In this document: positions 10,723-24,215 of the stretch, one piece after another
Position numbering within the stretch: position 1 is the stretch's first letter
How the letters are laid out: every line of letters begins with the position of its first letter
From: Entomortierella parvispora E1425
Taxonomy: Eukaryota > Fungi > Mortierellomycota
Reading direction: 5' to 3'
DNA length: 64,000 nt
Assembly: GCA_020891255.1 (NCBI GenBank)
Contig: BQFW01000013.1
Coordinates: forward strand, 1 to 64,000
Program-made: the position numbers and the translations under genes
The notes under the pieces: model-generated
Database searches by the model: none
Seen by the model: the letters and a program-made list of their open reading frames with translations, nothing else
Told to the model about the DNA's origin: nothing

Positions 10723-12086
10723 ATGGGCAGCAGCCAGTCCTCTCTGCAGGTCCGCCTGCAGAAAAAGCCAAAGATGTCCCAACAAGAACTCCAGCGTCAG
10801 TATCAACGGAACCTCAGCGAGCAGCAGCTCGCCGACCACCTCTCGGCTCGCCGTGCTCTCGAAGACAGTTCTATTTCCCGTACAGCAGACCTTTGCCAGA
10901 TCCCCGGCATCAATGGCCAGGCCCCCTCTATTATTGCCTCCACCGCCAATAACGAGAGCTTTTACCATCAGCGCCCCACTACCATCCATTCCACAGCCGA
11001 CGGCTCCAGGACGCGCCAAAACTTTCGGTGGATTGATGGTCGGCGACATCACAACATGGAGGGGGCACCCTACCTCCTGCCCAATGACATTGATGAAATG
11101 GACAGGTAGCGATTGAACATTGTTTGCTTGAACAAAGAGTCGAAAGCACCCCGAAGCTGACCTGCTCTTGACCCCCTTTGTGCCACCAAAATAGACTGCA
11201 TCTCCAGCATTATGTGATCCGCCATGCCTTTGGAGGGAACACACGCGCAAAGTTTGACGGCAAGGTGCACAAGGACGTGCTGGATGTTGGATGCGGGCCG
11301 GGCACATGGATCCTAGGCATGTCCAATCAGTCGTCTGTCTGCATGTTTCTATGACTTTTTTTTTGTTCACCTGTCACTAATGCCTTCGACCATTCGTATC
11401 TCTACCACACCACAGAAATGTCAACGGAGCACACAGAAACAAACTTCACGGGAATCGACATATCAGCCGTGTGGCCGACAGAGATTCGACCTCGCAACTG
11501 CCGATTCCAGGTAGTCGATGCAACACAAGGACTACCTTTTGAGGACAACACATTCGATTTTGTTTATCAACGGTTCATGATCCTGGGCTACCCCGCTGCT
11601 TCCTGGCCATTTGTTATTCAGGAGCTTGTTCGAGTTACAAAGCCGGGGGGGATCATTGAGTTGACCGAGATACCAGTGGTCTCCAATGCGAACGGCCCAG
11701 AACTTTCACGTATCATGGAGATCCTAGAGGCAGGGTGCATAGCAAAAGGACTAGACACCAAGGTGGCCAAGAAGCTCGACACACTACTGAGGGATGCTGG
11801 ACTTGTCGATGTCAAGTCCTGTCATGCCTCAATCCCAGTAGGCGCCTGGGGCACAAAAGTGGGGCAGCTCATGAGGGAGAATTCTGCCGGAATCTGGGCA
11901 AGTCTCAGAGGATGGATCAAGGAACTGACAAATATGAACGACGCCCAGTACGAGGCCATGATCAAGAGGATCTTTGTCGAATATGAAGTTCACAGGTGCT
12001 ACGTCAACTGCTATTGCGCCTGGGGTGTCAAACCTCATCCACAGGATTCCAGTTTAGAAGCCGAAACCTCCGCGAACCAGCATTGA
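10723..12086 (+). CDS. Class I SAM-dependent methyltransferase (LaeA/TdiE-like fungal family); exons 10723-11105, 11195-11316, 11416-12086
   Basis: PYLLPNDIDEMDR|LHLQHYVIRHAFGGN...VLDVGCGPGTWIL|EMSTE...FTGIDIS...LPFEDNTFDFVYQR...ELVRVTKPGGIIELTE. The second intron is GC-AG. Confidence 0.9.
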
Positions 12087-12445: not shown

Positions 12446-13999
12446 ATGGCACATCAACAATACAACAATCGCGCTTCACCCTATCGTACTTCACGCTCTA
12501 ATTCAACGTCAAACTCGAGAACATTGACAGACACTTTTTCTTCGCCTTTCTCGGATGGATCTCATATCCTCCGTCGATCGGTCAATATAGCTCGAGACAT
12601 CAGTAATCTCGCCGCGATCGCAGCATACTCATCGCAGCCAAGAGTACGACATCGAAACATGACAACGTTAGGGAATTCCCGGCAAAACAACTCGCCTAGT
12701 TTTTCACCGACAGATAATAACCAGAGGACACATCAAGATGAAGTAACCCACTACTCTCTGAACAGCACCAATCTGCACGAAGCGCGTCGCGTCACTGCAA
12801 CGAGGACACCTAACCAAATGCATCATATCCAGAACCAGTTCCCTAGTGTAATCAGGCAAGGTCTGGCCATGCCACTTCATCGTGGGCACCAACAGTCCTT
12901 GGACTCTGAGAGCGACGACGAGAGTGCGGACGAAGATATGAATGATGTTCGCGAACATGAAATGAACACCATGCTTACTGATGACAGAACGTCAAGTAAT
13001 GTTGTGAGGGAACCCTGGCAGACTTCTCAGCGAGACCGGCAGACACAATTGCTTCAACAGAGAAGCCGGCATGCTCAAGAACATCAATTCTCGGCTTTCC
13101 CACCGTCCCAGAGTCTGTTGCAGAGTGATCCCTCCGTGTCTGTCCAACAGAACACACAGTACGGTCATCAACGCCCTCATTCGCGTTCTCCTCAACAGCA
13201 GCTAGAGAGACCATCCGCGGAAGTCCAGCGTCAATCACCTGAGGAGCACGTACAGCGACCCGCCTTCCTCAGTCAACCGGTCTATCAATTAGCTTGTCGT
13301 GCATGCGTTCGCCCTTTGTGCCTACGAGCGATGAAGGCCGTCATGTTGAGTGACCACTCCAAAGAGTTGTATTCGACAGACATGCCGCCATCGGGACTGT
13401 CCCTCGTCAACGAGGACAGACAAGTTCGACATTGCGCTTGCAGGATCAGAGACAGTGCATGTCTGGGATGGTAAAGCACCATCCTGTAGATATTGTTCAG
13501 GCTGCCATAACAAACATTCACTCATCTGTTCGTTTTGATGGTAAATAGCGGCCAGGTAGCTGGATACCATGTCACTCAACCCTGCTCAAGTTGCCTTCGA
13601 GATCAGAACAATGGACATTTCTGGATGTTTTATTCGTCTGCGGTTCATCATTACAAGCGTAACCACATCAGTAATACTTTTTTTGTCATCGATGACTGCA
13701 CGAATCTCAATGCTAAGTACATACGACAACATGCTAATATTGATATTTTAACTTGAATAGAAGGCTCTTTGGGAGAGGCTATGATCTGGGCCAATGTGCC
13801 TCCCATAAACCACGACCAAGCATTGGCTCGGCAGCTACGCTTGGAGGTTCCTATCCTGCACATTCGCACGGCCACTTCATCCGCGAATGCATGGGGCGAC
13901 AATAATGGAGCAGCTGCCACAAACGAGCGCCCGTTGACCGCCTGCGTGGAGATGGAGGAATGGCTCAATTCTCCGGTTCTGGAAATTGTGTGCCGTTGA
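12446..13999 (+). CDS. FAM72: FAM72-family protein with long disordered N-terminal extension; introns 13471-13548, 13671-13760
   Basis: YQLACRACVRPLCLRAMKAVMLSD...LYSTDMPP...[45 protein letters not shown]...|KGSLGEAMIWANVP aligns collinearly with FAM72A ([55 protein letters not shown]). Confidence 0.92.
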
Positions 14000-14656: not shown

Positions 14657-15050
14657 ATGGCCCAAACTCAGCCCATGAAGGATCTCGCCGCCGCGAGGGC
14701 CAAGACCTCCTTCCCTGTCCACGATCTGACCCGATACATCCACGGGTCAGACGAAAAGATTGCCCGCCGTAGAGAACTCGCTGCCTTGGTCGCAAACGAC
14801 CCTGTCTTCAGCAACGACAAGAGAACTGGACTGAGCCGAGTCCAGGATGTCAAGCAAGGTCTGGCTATGAGTCTCAGACTCTACCAGCTCAAGGAGGAAC
14901 ACAAGCTGTCGCAAGAAGATTTCCTGACCTGTAAGACTGGAAATACTCAAGGAGATTAGCCTTCGGATGTGGTCGGCCTTTCTAACCCCTGTTTCGTTTC
15001 CTCGATTTTGTATATTCACAGGCATGGACTTTGTCGACGAATTGCTTCCG

Positions 15051-15087
<37 letters not shown>

Positions 15088-17218
15088 GCTGCTTTCCCAT
15101 CAGTCCGCGTGCATTCTCACAACATTACGTCTGTTTGTCAATAGATCGGACTGCATGAGACCGCTTTCATCCCAGTTATCTACGCACAGGGATCTGAGGA
15201 GCAAGCCAAGTACTGGGGACCCCTTGCGGAGAAGCACCAGATTATCGGATGCTATGCTCAGACTGAGATTGGACACGGCAGTACGTTTGCATGTGACTCT
15301 ACCCTTGAATTCTTTGAATACACTTCTGACCTATTCTTTCTTTTTTTATTAGGTAACCTCTCTGAGCTGGAAACTACTGCGACCCTGGACAGAGATTCTG
15401 ATCAGTGGATCATTCACAGCACCACATTCACGGCCTCAAAGTTTTGGATCGGAGGACTAGGTGTCATTTGCACTCACGCCCTCATCCAAGCGCGTCTCAT
15501 CATTGACGGTAAAGATTACGGGGCGCATGGCTTTATCGTCCCCATTAGATCCCTCAAGGACCACCGCCCTTTCCCCGGTGTCAAAGTTGGAGACATTGGA
15601 CCCAAGGCCTATGGCGGATTTTCCAAGATTGACAACGGCTGTAGGTTCCCTTATGAAACGCTTGCACTCCAGATAACGCTCTAGATTTCGATGGAGGATC
15701 ATAGAGCATGCTCCTCACCAGTTTGGCTTTTCTACTGTAGTTGTTCGATTTGACAAGCACCCAATCCCTCGTGAGAACATGTTGATGAGATTCGCCAAGG
15801 TCACCAAAGATGGCCAATACGTGAAGCCCCCTCATAGCAAGGTATGCTCAATGCCTTGGGTTATAACTCGCGACTCATCTGATCTTTTAGATCTAACGTT
15901 GTTTTTTTTTCACAGCTCGCTTATGGTTCCATGGTTCTCCTTCGCTCGCACATGGTTCGTGGAGCAGCCACAACTCTTGCTCGTGCGGCGACTATTGCGA
16001 CAAGATACACGACAGTGAGACGTCAATTCAAAGTTCCCACCAGTCGCAAGGACGTTGTCAACCCTTCCTTGGAGACCCAGGTCATCAATTACCCGATGGT
16101 TCAGGCACGCTTGTTCCCTATGATTGCTCAGATCTATGCTATCCTTGCTGCTGGTAATACCATGCGCGAAATGTACAACAGCATGTTGTCAGAGCTGATG
16201 AACGGCGACATTTCTTCATTGGCTGAGGTCCATGCCATCAGTTCCGGATTGAAGAGTACTTGCAGCACCATTGCCGCCACTGGTGTGGAGGACTGCCGCA
16301 AGCTGATGGGAGGTCATGGATATTCCTACTTCAGTGGAATTTCGCACATCTGGTCGACCTATGTGCCTTCCAACACCTATGAGGTACAATGATGCGAGAG
16401 GAAACTCGTTTTTTTTTTTTTTTTTTTTTTTTACCCTCTAAAGATTGCATCTAATTCTCTTGCCGTCTATACAATAGGGAGATAACTTTTTGTTGACTCA
16501 GCAATCAGCCCGCTACTTGCTGAAGCAGATCAGTCTGGCGACCACAGAGCCTGAGAAAGTGACCCCTTACTCTCGCTATGTTATCAAGACCATCGACCAG
16601 GATGCTTTCCAGGCAGAGCGATGTGCTGTACAGGAACCAGTGGACTGGCTGAGACCGGAGATCCAGTTGGCCGCCTTTGAGCACCGCGCTGGAAGACTTG
16701 TGGCCGACCTTGCCCTTGCCGCTATCCCTATGCAGGATGGCAGCATCGTTTGGAGTGATCTCAACCTGGAATGCTGGCGTCTTTGCCATGCGCACTCTCA
16801 GTATGTCCTCGCCAGATCTGCGATTGAAGGTGTGGCTAGCGCTAGATCCCAGGGTCTTGCCAAGGAGACCATTTTGGTTTTGAAGCGTCTCTCGGACCTC
16901 TTTGCACTCCATACGATTCAAGCATCATTGGGTGACTACTTGGAGGACTTTTACTTGTCGCCTCCTCAGTGTCAGTCTCTGCGCCTGCAGATCAAGAAGC
17001 TTCAAGAGTCTTTGGCGGACGATGTGGTCGGCCTCATGGACGCTTTTGACTTTGATGACCATTTCCTGAACAGCGCCTTGGGAAGCTTCGATGGAAACGC
17101 CTACCAACACCTGTGGGACTCTGTGCAGAAGGAGGAAATTAACCAGACTGAGGTGGTGGATGGCTACAAGGAGTATATCGCCCCAATTTTGAACCAGCAT
17201 GGCCCCGCAAAGTTGTAG
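14657..17218 (+). CDS. POX1: Peroxisomal acyl-CoA oxidase (multi-exon)
   Basis: IGCYAQTEIGHGS, KFWIGGLG, KVGDIGPK, AVEDCRKLMGGHGYS-type motif, SALGSFDGNAYQHL, C-terminal PTS1 -AKL*. Confidence 0.95.

Positions 17219-18445: not shown

Positions 18446-24215
<5,770 letters not shown>

Follow-up and report, generated by a model that had tools for sequence, protein, structure and literature searches.

A divergent FAM72 paralog of Mortierellaceae fungi with a predicted N-degron pocket and a C-terminal arginine, and its possible docking on muskelin

The window (the whole stretch of DNA analysed here, 64,000 nucleotides from contig BQFW01000013.1 of Entomortierella parvispora E1425) carries at 12446-13999 a gene that is a genuine, divergent member of the FAM72 family and a paralog specific to Mortierellaceae. 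The most probable reading of its product (probability roughly 0.6), judged from sequence comparison, is a muskelin-docked N-degron receptor in a GID/CTLH-type E3 ligase. Up to 2024-2026, FAM72A counted as a vertebrate factor of antibody diversification; work of those years then showed that it serves CTLH-MKLN1 as a receptor that reads an acetylated N-degron. By analogy, the C-terminal ...VCR of the window protein would dock onto the Kelch channel of muskelin and its zinc-1 face onto the muskelin discoidin trench. The protein would then present for ubiquitylation those proteins whose acetylated N-terminus fits its pocket, and its own turnover would probably depend on this ligase as well.

The gene consists of three exons on the forward strand (Table 1), whose translations exactly tile the 461-aa NCBI protein EMPS_09226 of E. 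parvispora; the gene was analysed by single exons and through this protein. Two codons are split by the introns: intron 1 interrupts that of C342 (the final Cys in zinc site 1), and intron 2 that of K383. An alternative donor GT of intron 2 at 13659, giving a protein of 458 aa, was ruled out, since the GTAATA donor at 13671 gives both the gap-free alignment with orthologs and the match to the 461-aa NCBI protein.

Table 1. Features of the FAM72-family gene and of the nearby muskelin gene (positions in the window)
Feature	Position	Strand	Remarks
Exon 1	12446..13470	+	EMPS_09226 residues 1-341 and two bases of codon 342; low-complexity N-terminal extension and first half of FAM72 domain; PF14976 match aa 273-340
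Intron 1	13471..13548	+	GTAAAG...AATAG; C342 codon split (TG + C = Cys)
Exon 2	13549..13670	+	aa 342-383, translation = residues 343-382; Y348, C354/C357 pair, N362-N363-G-H-F-W-M-F pocket motif; PF14976 53 bits alone
Intron 2	13671..13760	+	GTAATA...AATAG; CTAAT branch-like site; ortholog alignment gap-free with 13671 donor
Exon 3	13761..13999	+	aa 383-461 and TGA stop, translation = residues 384-461; domain end with W392, helix, disordered tail
N-terminal extension, aa 1-270	12446..13255	+	S/Q/R/N/T-rich, low complexity
FAM72 (Yippee/beta-tent) domain, aa 271-411	13256..13846	+	two introns within; PF14976, AF2, Foldseek
W392 codon	13787..13789	+	TGG; equivalent of human W125
C-terminal tail, aa 412-461	13847..13996	+	predicted disordered from about aa 415; Arg last
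R461 codon	13994..13996	+	CGT, TGA next; C-terminal, candidate Arg/C-degron for muskelin
Muskelin (MKLN1) homolog	19822..24215	+	start approximate; multi-exon, PF06588 matches; predicted docking partner

Membership of the FAM72 family, proposed in a preliminary description of this DNA, was confirmed by the profile PF14976 (FAM72, now named YPEH2ZP), which matches aa 273-400 over profile positions 3-129 of 145 with 138.4 bits against a cut-off of 27; exon by exon, the scores are 57.5 and 53.1 bits. Over the domain, an AF2 model built from an alignment of 30 sequences reaches pLDDT 80-95, and a Foldseek search found Mis18, YPEL5 and CRBN (cereblon), each with probability 1.00. A full-length AF2 run with eight orthologs gave a mean pLDDT of 38 with even the domain unfolded, and was left out as evidence for disorder. 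The Yippee domain of Mis18 and the CULT domain of cereblon share with the window protein the beta-tent fold pinned by CxxC/CxxC zinc, but at 8-17% sequence identity (Foldseek) and without a second zinc or an Arg tail. Mis18 is a centromere licensing factor, and the aromatic cage of cereblon reads C-terminal cyclic imides. YPEL5, a receptor or inhibitor on CTLH-WDR26, shares the fold (Foldseek TM about 0.65 by target) and a comparable role as a CTLH accessory subunit binding a beta-propeller subunit. However, YPEL5 has neither the FAM72-specific second zinc site nor the closing beta-hairpin (PMC13676621), binds WDR26 instead of muskelin, and is without the C-terminal Arg degron.

The zinc-binding Cys pairs mentioned in the preliminary description are indeed all kept (four pairs, C284/C287, C330/C332, C339/C342 and C354/C357). 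C284, C287, C339 and C342 correspond to human C18, C21, C74 and C77 and make up zinc site 1, and C330/C332 together with C354/C357 would form the FAM72-specific zinc site 2. For human zinc site 2, four Cys ligands are stated, of which C65 and C67 are the only two named (bioRxiv 10.64898/2026.09.19.752822); we infer that the adjacent CxxC pair, C89/C92, provides the remaining two.

In human FAM72A, the pocket that reads UNG2 takes up Ac-Met1-[ILV]2-Gly3 and narrows to a tight passage at Gly3 (bioRxiv 10.64898/2026.09.19.752822). Since a PDB sequence search with EMPS_09226 gave no FAM72A chain among the matches, the human numbering was bridged through animal FAM72 proteins of 149-151 aa and the residues named in the structure papers (PMC13676621; bioRxiv 10.64898/2026.09.19.752822). 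Of the 26 human residues mapped, the bridging proteins share 23, and the papers name nearly all of the 26 (C89/C92 being inferred). In this alignment, the pocket residues needed according to mutagenesis are kept (F274, Y348 and N362/N363 for human F8, Y83 and N97/N98). The counterparts of the tunnel and cavity residues (A298, V299, M300, L301, L308, S310, I334, V350, P353, L358, F366 and M368) likewise align as identical or conservative, with human L34 replaced by Met and L69 by Ile. The exception is human C96, which is Gln in the window protein; C96 is named only for a main-chain contact (bioRxiv 10.64898/2026.09.19.752822). By sequence, then, the pocket for Ac-Met-[Ile/Leu/Val]-Gly is predicted to be intact save for this replacement.

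The alignment also pairs W392 with W125 and R461 with R149. Thus the Trp pointed out in the preliminary description is present, but its designation there as UNG2-binding does not hold: W125R kills binding to UNG2 and to MKLN1 alike, and in the structure W125 lies at neither interface (PMC11364545). The C-terminal Arg, also pointed out there, is indeed retained and has a functional meaning in human FAM72A, where it is an Arg/C-degron that docks into the Kelch channel of MKLN1 (PMC13676621). The domain followed by a tail ending in Arg is a layout common to the two proteins (PMC11364545, PMC13676621). Human and mouse FAM72A (Ugene, the CTLH-MKLN1 substrate receptor) further share with the window protein PF14976, the Yippee/beta-tent fold, both zinc sites, the identical or conservative pocket residues, the Trp, the disorder of the tail, and a muskelin with conserved contact residues in the same genome.

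Human FAM72A has 149 aa, whereas the window protein has 461 with a low-complexity N-terminal arm of about 270 residues, as the preliminary description had noted. Aa 1-270 are 76% polar or disorder-promoting, contain no Pfam domain, and are probably disordered. The arm is poorly conserved among orthologs save for two short motifs, FSDGSH.LRRS.N.A...S.LA and an acidic Ser/Asp/Glu patch. The tail (AF2 pLDDT under 50 across aa 415-461) is about 45 aa longer than in human FAM72A and has its own conserved motif (ERPLTACVEMEEWLNSP..EV.CR); in the Mortierellaceae orthologs the end motif ...MEEWLNSP..E[IV].CR is kept. Both the arm and the conserved extension of the tail are additions particular to this lineage, possibly for regulation or the binding of extra partners. 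Besides C96 to Gln, the window protein has Met for L34 and ends in -VCR instead of -CIR. This ending, also unlike the -PER/-PDR degrons that ZMYND19 and AAMP carry, was counted against the receptor reading.

A muskelin gene lies 6 kb downstream of the FAM72 gene. Aligned exon by exon to PDB 8ttq_A (with an offset of +20 in the chain numbering), 4oyu and 4pqq, the fungal muskelin keeps the Arg-binding residues of the Kelch channel (G273, W291, Y346, R407 and R517) and those of the discoidin trench (Y30, H80 and F143), which in human MKLN1 touch the domain of FAM72A. Matches to the CTLH profile PF10607 above the cut-off occur at five genomic places, at the level of the domain only, so that RanBP9, TWA1, MAEA and RMND5 are not told apart. 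No muskelin was found in the fetched flanks of the FAM72 locus in Linnemannia hyalina or Mortierella alpina. Because the 6-kb proximity is not kept in these two species, it adds no support to a connection of the two genes and is probably coincidental.

Cys pairs, Trp and C-terminal Arg are conserved far beyond chance, but this conservation runs through the whole family, and none of these traits is special to the window gene. Among 131 fungal and animal relatives, the mapped zinc, pocket and Trp positions are near-invariant, with the Trp kept in 108 of the 112 sequences aligned there and a C-terminal Arg in 107 of the 131, mostly as [VILM]-C-R. In the 120 best matches, the named relatives, where placeable, are animals, non-Dikarya fungi and one other opisthokont, a spread that fits the opisthokont-only distribution of muskelin (PMC3797097). 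The E. parvispora genome has five FAM72 paralogs, all ending in Arg despite very different insertions. The preliminary description had taken the window gene as the fungal FAM72; it is instead one of these five, and the canonical copy is on contig 3. That copy, like the chytrid and Mucorales proteins annotated as 'protein FAM72', shares with the window protein the domain, the pocket, the Trp and the -[VILM]CR end, but the window protein has RAMKAVML for RGMKAILL, DQNNG for ACNNG, and its own tail motif.

In a tree without the paralogs of contigs 1, 4 and 7, which contain introns and were read exon by exon only, the window gene falls in a separate clade of Mortierellaceae only (SH-aLRT 99) on a stem of 0.99 substitutions per site. 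With so long a stem, surfaces outside the pocket, including the one facing muskelin, may have changed, and we counted this too against the receptor reading. The long stem and the five copies would also fit a decaying or non-functional duplicate of the contig 3 gene, and a search for sequencing runs listed no RNA run. However, the open reading frame is uninterrupted, the splice sites are canonical, and orthologs are found in at least eight Mortierellaceae genera with a domain about 95% identical across genera. The tail motif is kept, as is the local gene order of methyltransferase, FAM72 and acyl-CoA oxidase in L. hyalina and M. alpina. This conservation effectively refutes decay, which we regard as hardly credible.

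A further proposal of the preliminary description was that this protein regulates uracil excision by an ancestral mechanism, that is, that it binds fungal Ung1 and brings about its degradation. In human and mouse, FAM72A acts on UNG2 in this way (PMC11364545). The window protein keeps the pocket residues together with the Trp and the C-terminal Arg, and the genome encodes both Ung1 and muskelin. However, FAM72A reads Ac-Met1-[ILV]2-Gly3 (bioRxiv 10.64898/2026.09.19.752822), whereas the annotated Ung1 of E. parvispora starts with MTLTKRPAEQ and its Mortierellaceae orthologs with MNKRPAD, MSKRP, MAMNKRP, MSNVKRP or MLKRPAD. Among 25 database matches to Ung1, mostly named Mortierellaceae with a few fragments, none of the 24 with an N-terminus has an M-[ILV]-G start. 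Gly is absent from position 3 in all Ung1 orthologs examined, and the first three residues are not conserved. Furthermore, neither exon 1 of Ung1 nor the stretch of 783 bases upstream of its start contains an ATG-[ILV]-Gly codon triplet, and the PIP-like box of Ung1 (QTSLLGWA) is internal, not N-terminal as in UNG2. Since Ung1 lacks the N-terminus that FAM72 reads, the known relation between FAM72A and its substrate UNG2 does not carry over, and the suggested connection with uracil repair finds no support even with the predicted pocket intact; from these sequences we judge such a role distinctly improbable. On contig 2, at about 1.10 Mb, a second match of the UDG family resembles a glycosylase of the TDG/MUG type and not an Ung. 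Ist1, a homolog of another human FAM72A substrate, starts with MFNPT in E. parvispora, and thus the degron is not conserved there either. That neither homolog of these two human substrates has M-[ILV]-G was also counted against the receptor reading.

Another possibility is that the window protein is mainly a client of muskelin, degraded as a CTLH substrate through its C-terminal Arg, with the domain and the arm serving otherwise, for example in Mis18-like oligomerisation or in chromatin or RPA binding. In fact, MKLN1 also mediates the degradation of human FAM72A, which dimerises (bioRxiv 10.64898/2026.09.19.752822), and FAM72B binds RPA and chromatin (PMC11377751). Fungal paralogs carry low-complexity arms or insertions of 200-500 aa, which are absent from animal FAM72, and those on contigs 1 and 7 still end in Arg with their pocket residues altered. 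However, the pocket residues have been conserved as strictly as the zinc ligands over roughly a billion years, so an unused pocket would be hard to explain. We therefore find a mainly client role unlikely, and the roles of client and adaptor are in any case not exclusive.

In a wider reading, the ancestral adaptor would read acetylated Met-hydrophobic-Gly N-termini and plug its own C-terminal Arg into muskelin. The targeting of UNG2 in antibody diversification would then be a late co-option, and the early-diverging fungi would have expanded the adaptor (in E. parvispora to five copies, each with a long disordered arm and two with a remodelled pocket). The reader, that is, the two zinc sites, the pocket and the Arg tail, and the muskelin sockets are conserved in a lineage without adaptive immunity. 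Together with the expansion of the family and the lack of conservation of the UNG N-terminus, this argues that the original job of the pathway was not UNG control. Only tentatively, and at slightly less than even odds, we propose that FAM72 and muskelin constitute an opisthokont degron pathway that predates animals, with UNG2 as a late addition and the fungal paralogs diversifying the CTLH substrates. Fungi such as Mortierella alpina would be systems in which to seek the ancestral substrates. The finding adds evolutionary context and a prediction open to testing; the family is already known and annotated, and this is not a new type of system. A literature search found no paper on fungal FAM72. 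In public annotation, orthologs of the window gene already carry the label 'Protein fam72a'.

A three-exon gene with an open exon 1 and two short introns was obtained by DNA reading and piecewise translation (see table). Exon 1, used as the query of a word search, matched P0001, the 461-aa NCBI 'hypothetical protein EMPS_09226 [Entomortierella parvispora]', at 100% identity, which makes the source a soil fungus of the Mortierellaceae; the split codons TG/C and A/AA encode residues C342 and K383 of P0001. The donor of intron 2 is GTAATA at 13671, the sole choice giving a gap-free ortholog alignment; GT at 13659 was thereby ruled out. Exon pieces or P0001, and no joined spliced protein, were the queries of all searches. 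P0001 matched Pfam PF14976 (formerly FAM72, currently YPEH2ZP, 'Yippee homolog 2 zinc finger protein') with 138.4 bits (cut-off 27), aa 273-400 corresponding to profile positions 3-129 of 145, which bears out the FAM72 membership proposed in the preliminary description; the Pfam search of P0001 found no domain other than PF14976. Orthologs already carry the GenBank label 'Protein fam72a', and our literature search found no paper on fungal FAM72; the gene is a newly described member, with some elaboration, of a family already known.

AlphaFold2, given a 30-sequence alignment, modeled aa 262-461 with pLDDT of 80-95 across about aa 272-411. The model has about nine beta-strands, one short helix by the second zinc site and a further helix past the Trp; pLDDT of the tail (aa 415-461) was below 50. 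Foldseek matched the model to PDB entries for Mis18 Yippee domains, the CTLH receptor YPEL5 and cereblon (probability 1.00 each; target TM about 0.65-0.75 for isolated Yippee domains), and the modeled domain is a beta-tent fold, as described for human FAM72A. Sequence search of the PDB copy used found no FAM72A chain.

Features of the window, the paralogs and P0001
Feature	Location	Strand	Remarks
Class I methyltransferase gene	window 11418-12086	+	upstream flank of FAM72
FAM72-family gene (contig 13 copy)	window 12446-13999	+	three exons, 461 aa, ends IVCR, pocket intact
Exon 1	window 12446-13470	+	P0001 residues 1-341
Exon 2	window 13549-13670	+	P0001 residues 343-382
Exon 3	window 13761-13999	+	P0001 residues 384-461
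Acyl-CoA oxidase gene	window 14657-17218	+	downstream flank of FAM72
Muskelin homolog	window 19822-24215	+	complete, multi-exon, about 6 kb downstream of FAM72 gene
Contig 3 copy	C3:1132821-1134806 (L001:766-2751)	minus	single exon, 661 aa, ends QVCR, pocket intact
Contig 4 copy	L016:3092-5508	minus	about 500-aa insertion, ends SMCR
Contig 1 copy	L003 about 113-1779	plus	several exons, ends VICR, pocket altered: NNGHHWLF
Contig 7 copy	L007 about 207-1695	plus	several exons, ends NVGR, pocket heavily altered
F274	P0001		human F8
C284, C287, C339, C342	P0001		zinc 1
C330, C332, C354, C357	P0001		zinc 2
Y348	P0001		human Y83
N362, N363	P0001		human N97, N98
A298, V299, M300, L301, L308, S310, I334, V350, P353, L358, F366, M368	P0001		tunnel and cavity
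Q361	P0001		human C96, named for main-chain contact
W392	P0001; TGG 13787-13789		human W125
R461	P0001; CGT 13994-13996		human R149

Human FAM72A is an adaptor carrying UNG2 to the CTLH-MKLN1 E3 ligase, and its last 20 or so residues bind MKLN1 (Barbulescu et al. 2024, PMC11364545). Its zinc 1 is C18, C21, C74 and C77, and zinc 2 includes C65 and C67; Y83 bonds the acetyl group, ITC shows F8, N97 and N98 to be essential, and the tunnel and cavity consist of L34, L35, L69, V85, P88, L93, F101, A32, L42, S44 and M103 (2026 preprint 10.64898/2026.09.19.752822). We bridged human numbering through animal FAM72 proteins of 149-151 aa (+1 offset), which match the human protein at 23 of the 26 mapped residues, nearly all of them named in the papers. 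The zinc Cys pairs, the W125-equivalent Trp and the C-terminal Arg described earlier are all present in P0001. However, all mapped positions are near-invariant among 131 relatives (animals, chytrids, Blastocladiomycota, Neocallimastigomycota, Zoopagomycota, Mucoromycota and Mortierellomycota), and thus these features belong to the family rather than to this gene. The C-terminal Arg occurs in 107 of the 131, usually as [VILM]-C-R; those of corals end -EECIR. To call the Trp 'UNG2-binding' was an over-reading, since W125R loses binding to UNG2 and MKLN1 alike with the fold still stable, and the structure predicts no direct W125-MKLN1 contact (PMC11364545). The emphasis on the Arg was sound: the MKLN1 Kelch channel holds the C-terminal Arg of FAM72A, and likewise that of ZMYND19 (Nature Communications 2026, PMC13676621), so that this residue has a genuine function.

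The map with ZMYND19 bound shows G273, W291, Y346, R407 and R517 as the MKLN1 residues that make contact (PMC13676621). According to the same paper, the Yippee domain lies with its zinc-coordinated face in the discoidin trench (Y30, H80, F143), and the acetylated N-terminus of UNG2 occupies a Y-shaped tunnel. PF06588 (Muskelin_N) matched a single place in the genome, in the window at about 19.8-24.2 kb, and the CTLH-domain profile PF10607 matched five. Compared exon by exon with the human or rat chains 8ttq_A (five landmark residues confirm the SEQRES offset of +20), 4oyu and 4pqq, the fungal muskelin keeps 5/5 Kelch-channel and 3/3 discoidin residues. Muskelin is confined to opisthokonts (PMC3797097); the named FAM72 relatives, as far as placeable among the best 120 matches (a capped, length-limited list and no proof of absence in other groups), come from animals, non-Dikarya fungi and one other opisthokont. 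The most likely mechanism, to which we give a probability of about 60%, is that the window protein would dock on muskelin as a receptor and, so docked, would receive acetylated N-termini. The window gene would be evidence for a FAM72-muskelin degron pathway older than its immunological use. The protein itself is probably turned over by the ligase; that it is mainly a muskelin client, with its Yippee domain doing something else, seems rather unlikely. That the two genes lie 6 kb apart is probably coincidental, because this closeness is not conserved: the order methyltransferase-FAM72-acyl-CoA oxidase is kept in Linnemannia hyalina and Mortierella alpina (tblastn, 77-89% identity), and no muskelin was present in the examined FAM72 flanks of either.

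Human FAM72A reads the degron AcM-[ILV]-G, in which Gly3 meets a steric bottleneck, and its other substrates are HPF1, HEBP1, IST1 and QKI (10.64898/2026.09.19.752822). The genome has a single Ung-type gene, on contig 2 (L008, C2:1990638-1994075), and the annotated Ung1 (P0131, 331 aa) begins MTLTKRPAEQ. The N-termini available for 24 of 25 database matches read MNKRPAD, MSKRP, MAMNKRP, MSNVKRP, MLKRPAD, MTLQKRR and similar, and none of the 24 has Gly at position 3. In most of them residue 2 is small, and from the known methionine aminopeptidase (MetAP) rule these are predicted to lose the initiator Met. Neither the 783 bases upstream of Ung1 nor its exon 1 contains an ATG-[ILV]-Gly triplet. 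Since the pocket is essentially identical to the human one and Ung1 lacks M-[ILV]-G, canonical recognition of Ung1 would not be expected, though an alternative Ung1 first exon or another mode of binding is conceivable. A search for sequencing runs yielded none of RNA. Control of Ung1 by the window protein is accordingly judged improbable: the family assignment and the functional Arg of the earlier interpretation stand, but its regulation of uracil excision is not supported. Ist1 of E. parvispora, homologous to another human substrate, starts MFNPT.

Ung1 conservation begins at KRPAD and runs to the internal PIP-like box (QQSSLLAWAKPK); this box, QTSLLGWAKPK, follows the conserved KRPA[DE] and is some 30 residues away from the N-terminus. 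An upstream in-frame MQRRASSFFSF, also PIP-like in look, is in a pyrimidine-rich leader outside the annotated protein, and long runs of A or T occur in the Ung1 introns. A second UDG-superfamily match (L009, C2:1100897-1104031, minus strand) carries GINPG...HFAGP.NHFW and was rejected as Ung because of its resemblance to mismatch glycosylases of the TDG/MUG type.

A profile search of the 38.9-Mb genome found PF14976 at five loci, the contig 3 copy scoring highest (157 bits). Each of the four other paralogs has long low-complexity arms or insertions and ends in Arg. The contig 4 pocket retains the core N97/N98, F101 and M103, with C96 replaced by Pro; on contigs 1 and 7 the altered pockets suggest diversified specificity. 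A quick maximum-likelihood tree was built from 102 columns of the core domain; intron-containing paralogs, which were read exon by exon, were left out of it, and its overall resolution was weak. In this tree the window gene and orthologs of at least eight Mortierellaceae genera form one clade (SH-aLRT 99) with a stem of 0.99 substitutions per site and very short internal branches, and the contig 3 copy sits on a short branch among ordinary fungal 'protein FAM72'. Because the tree program warns of long-branch effects, we rely only on this clade and its long stem. The canonical one of the five is the contig 3 copy, not the window gene. Within the clade the domain is about 95% identical and the tail has a conserved motif, ERPLTACVEMEEWLNSP..EV.CR; that the gene, for all its long stem, is a dead duplicate is scarcely credible.

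The N-terminal 'extension' of the preliminary description agrees with the composition of the arm (76% polar or disorder-promoting residues) and with its absence of any domain. The first 270 residues are poorly conserved within the clade, except for an acidic patch and FSDGSH.LRRS.N.A...S.LA (aa 34-62 of P0001, window about 12545-12631). The latter is the sole motif well conserved in the arm, and it might serve in phosphorylation or as a short linear interaction motif. In a full-length model that otherwise failed, this motif was helical, with pLDDT of about 55.
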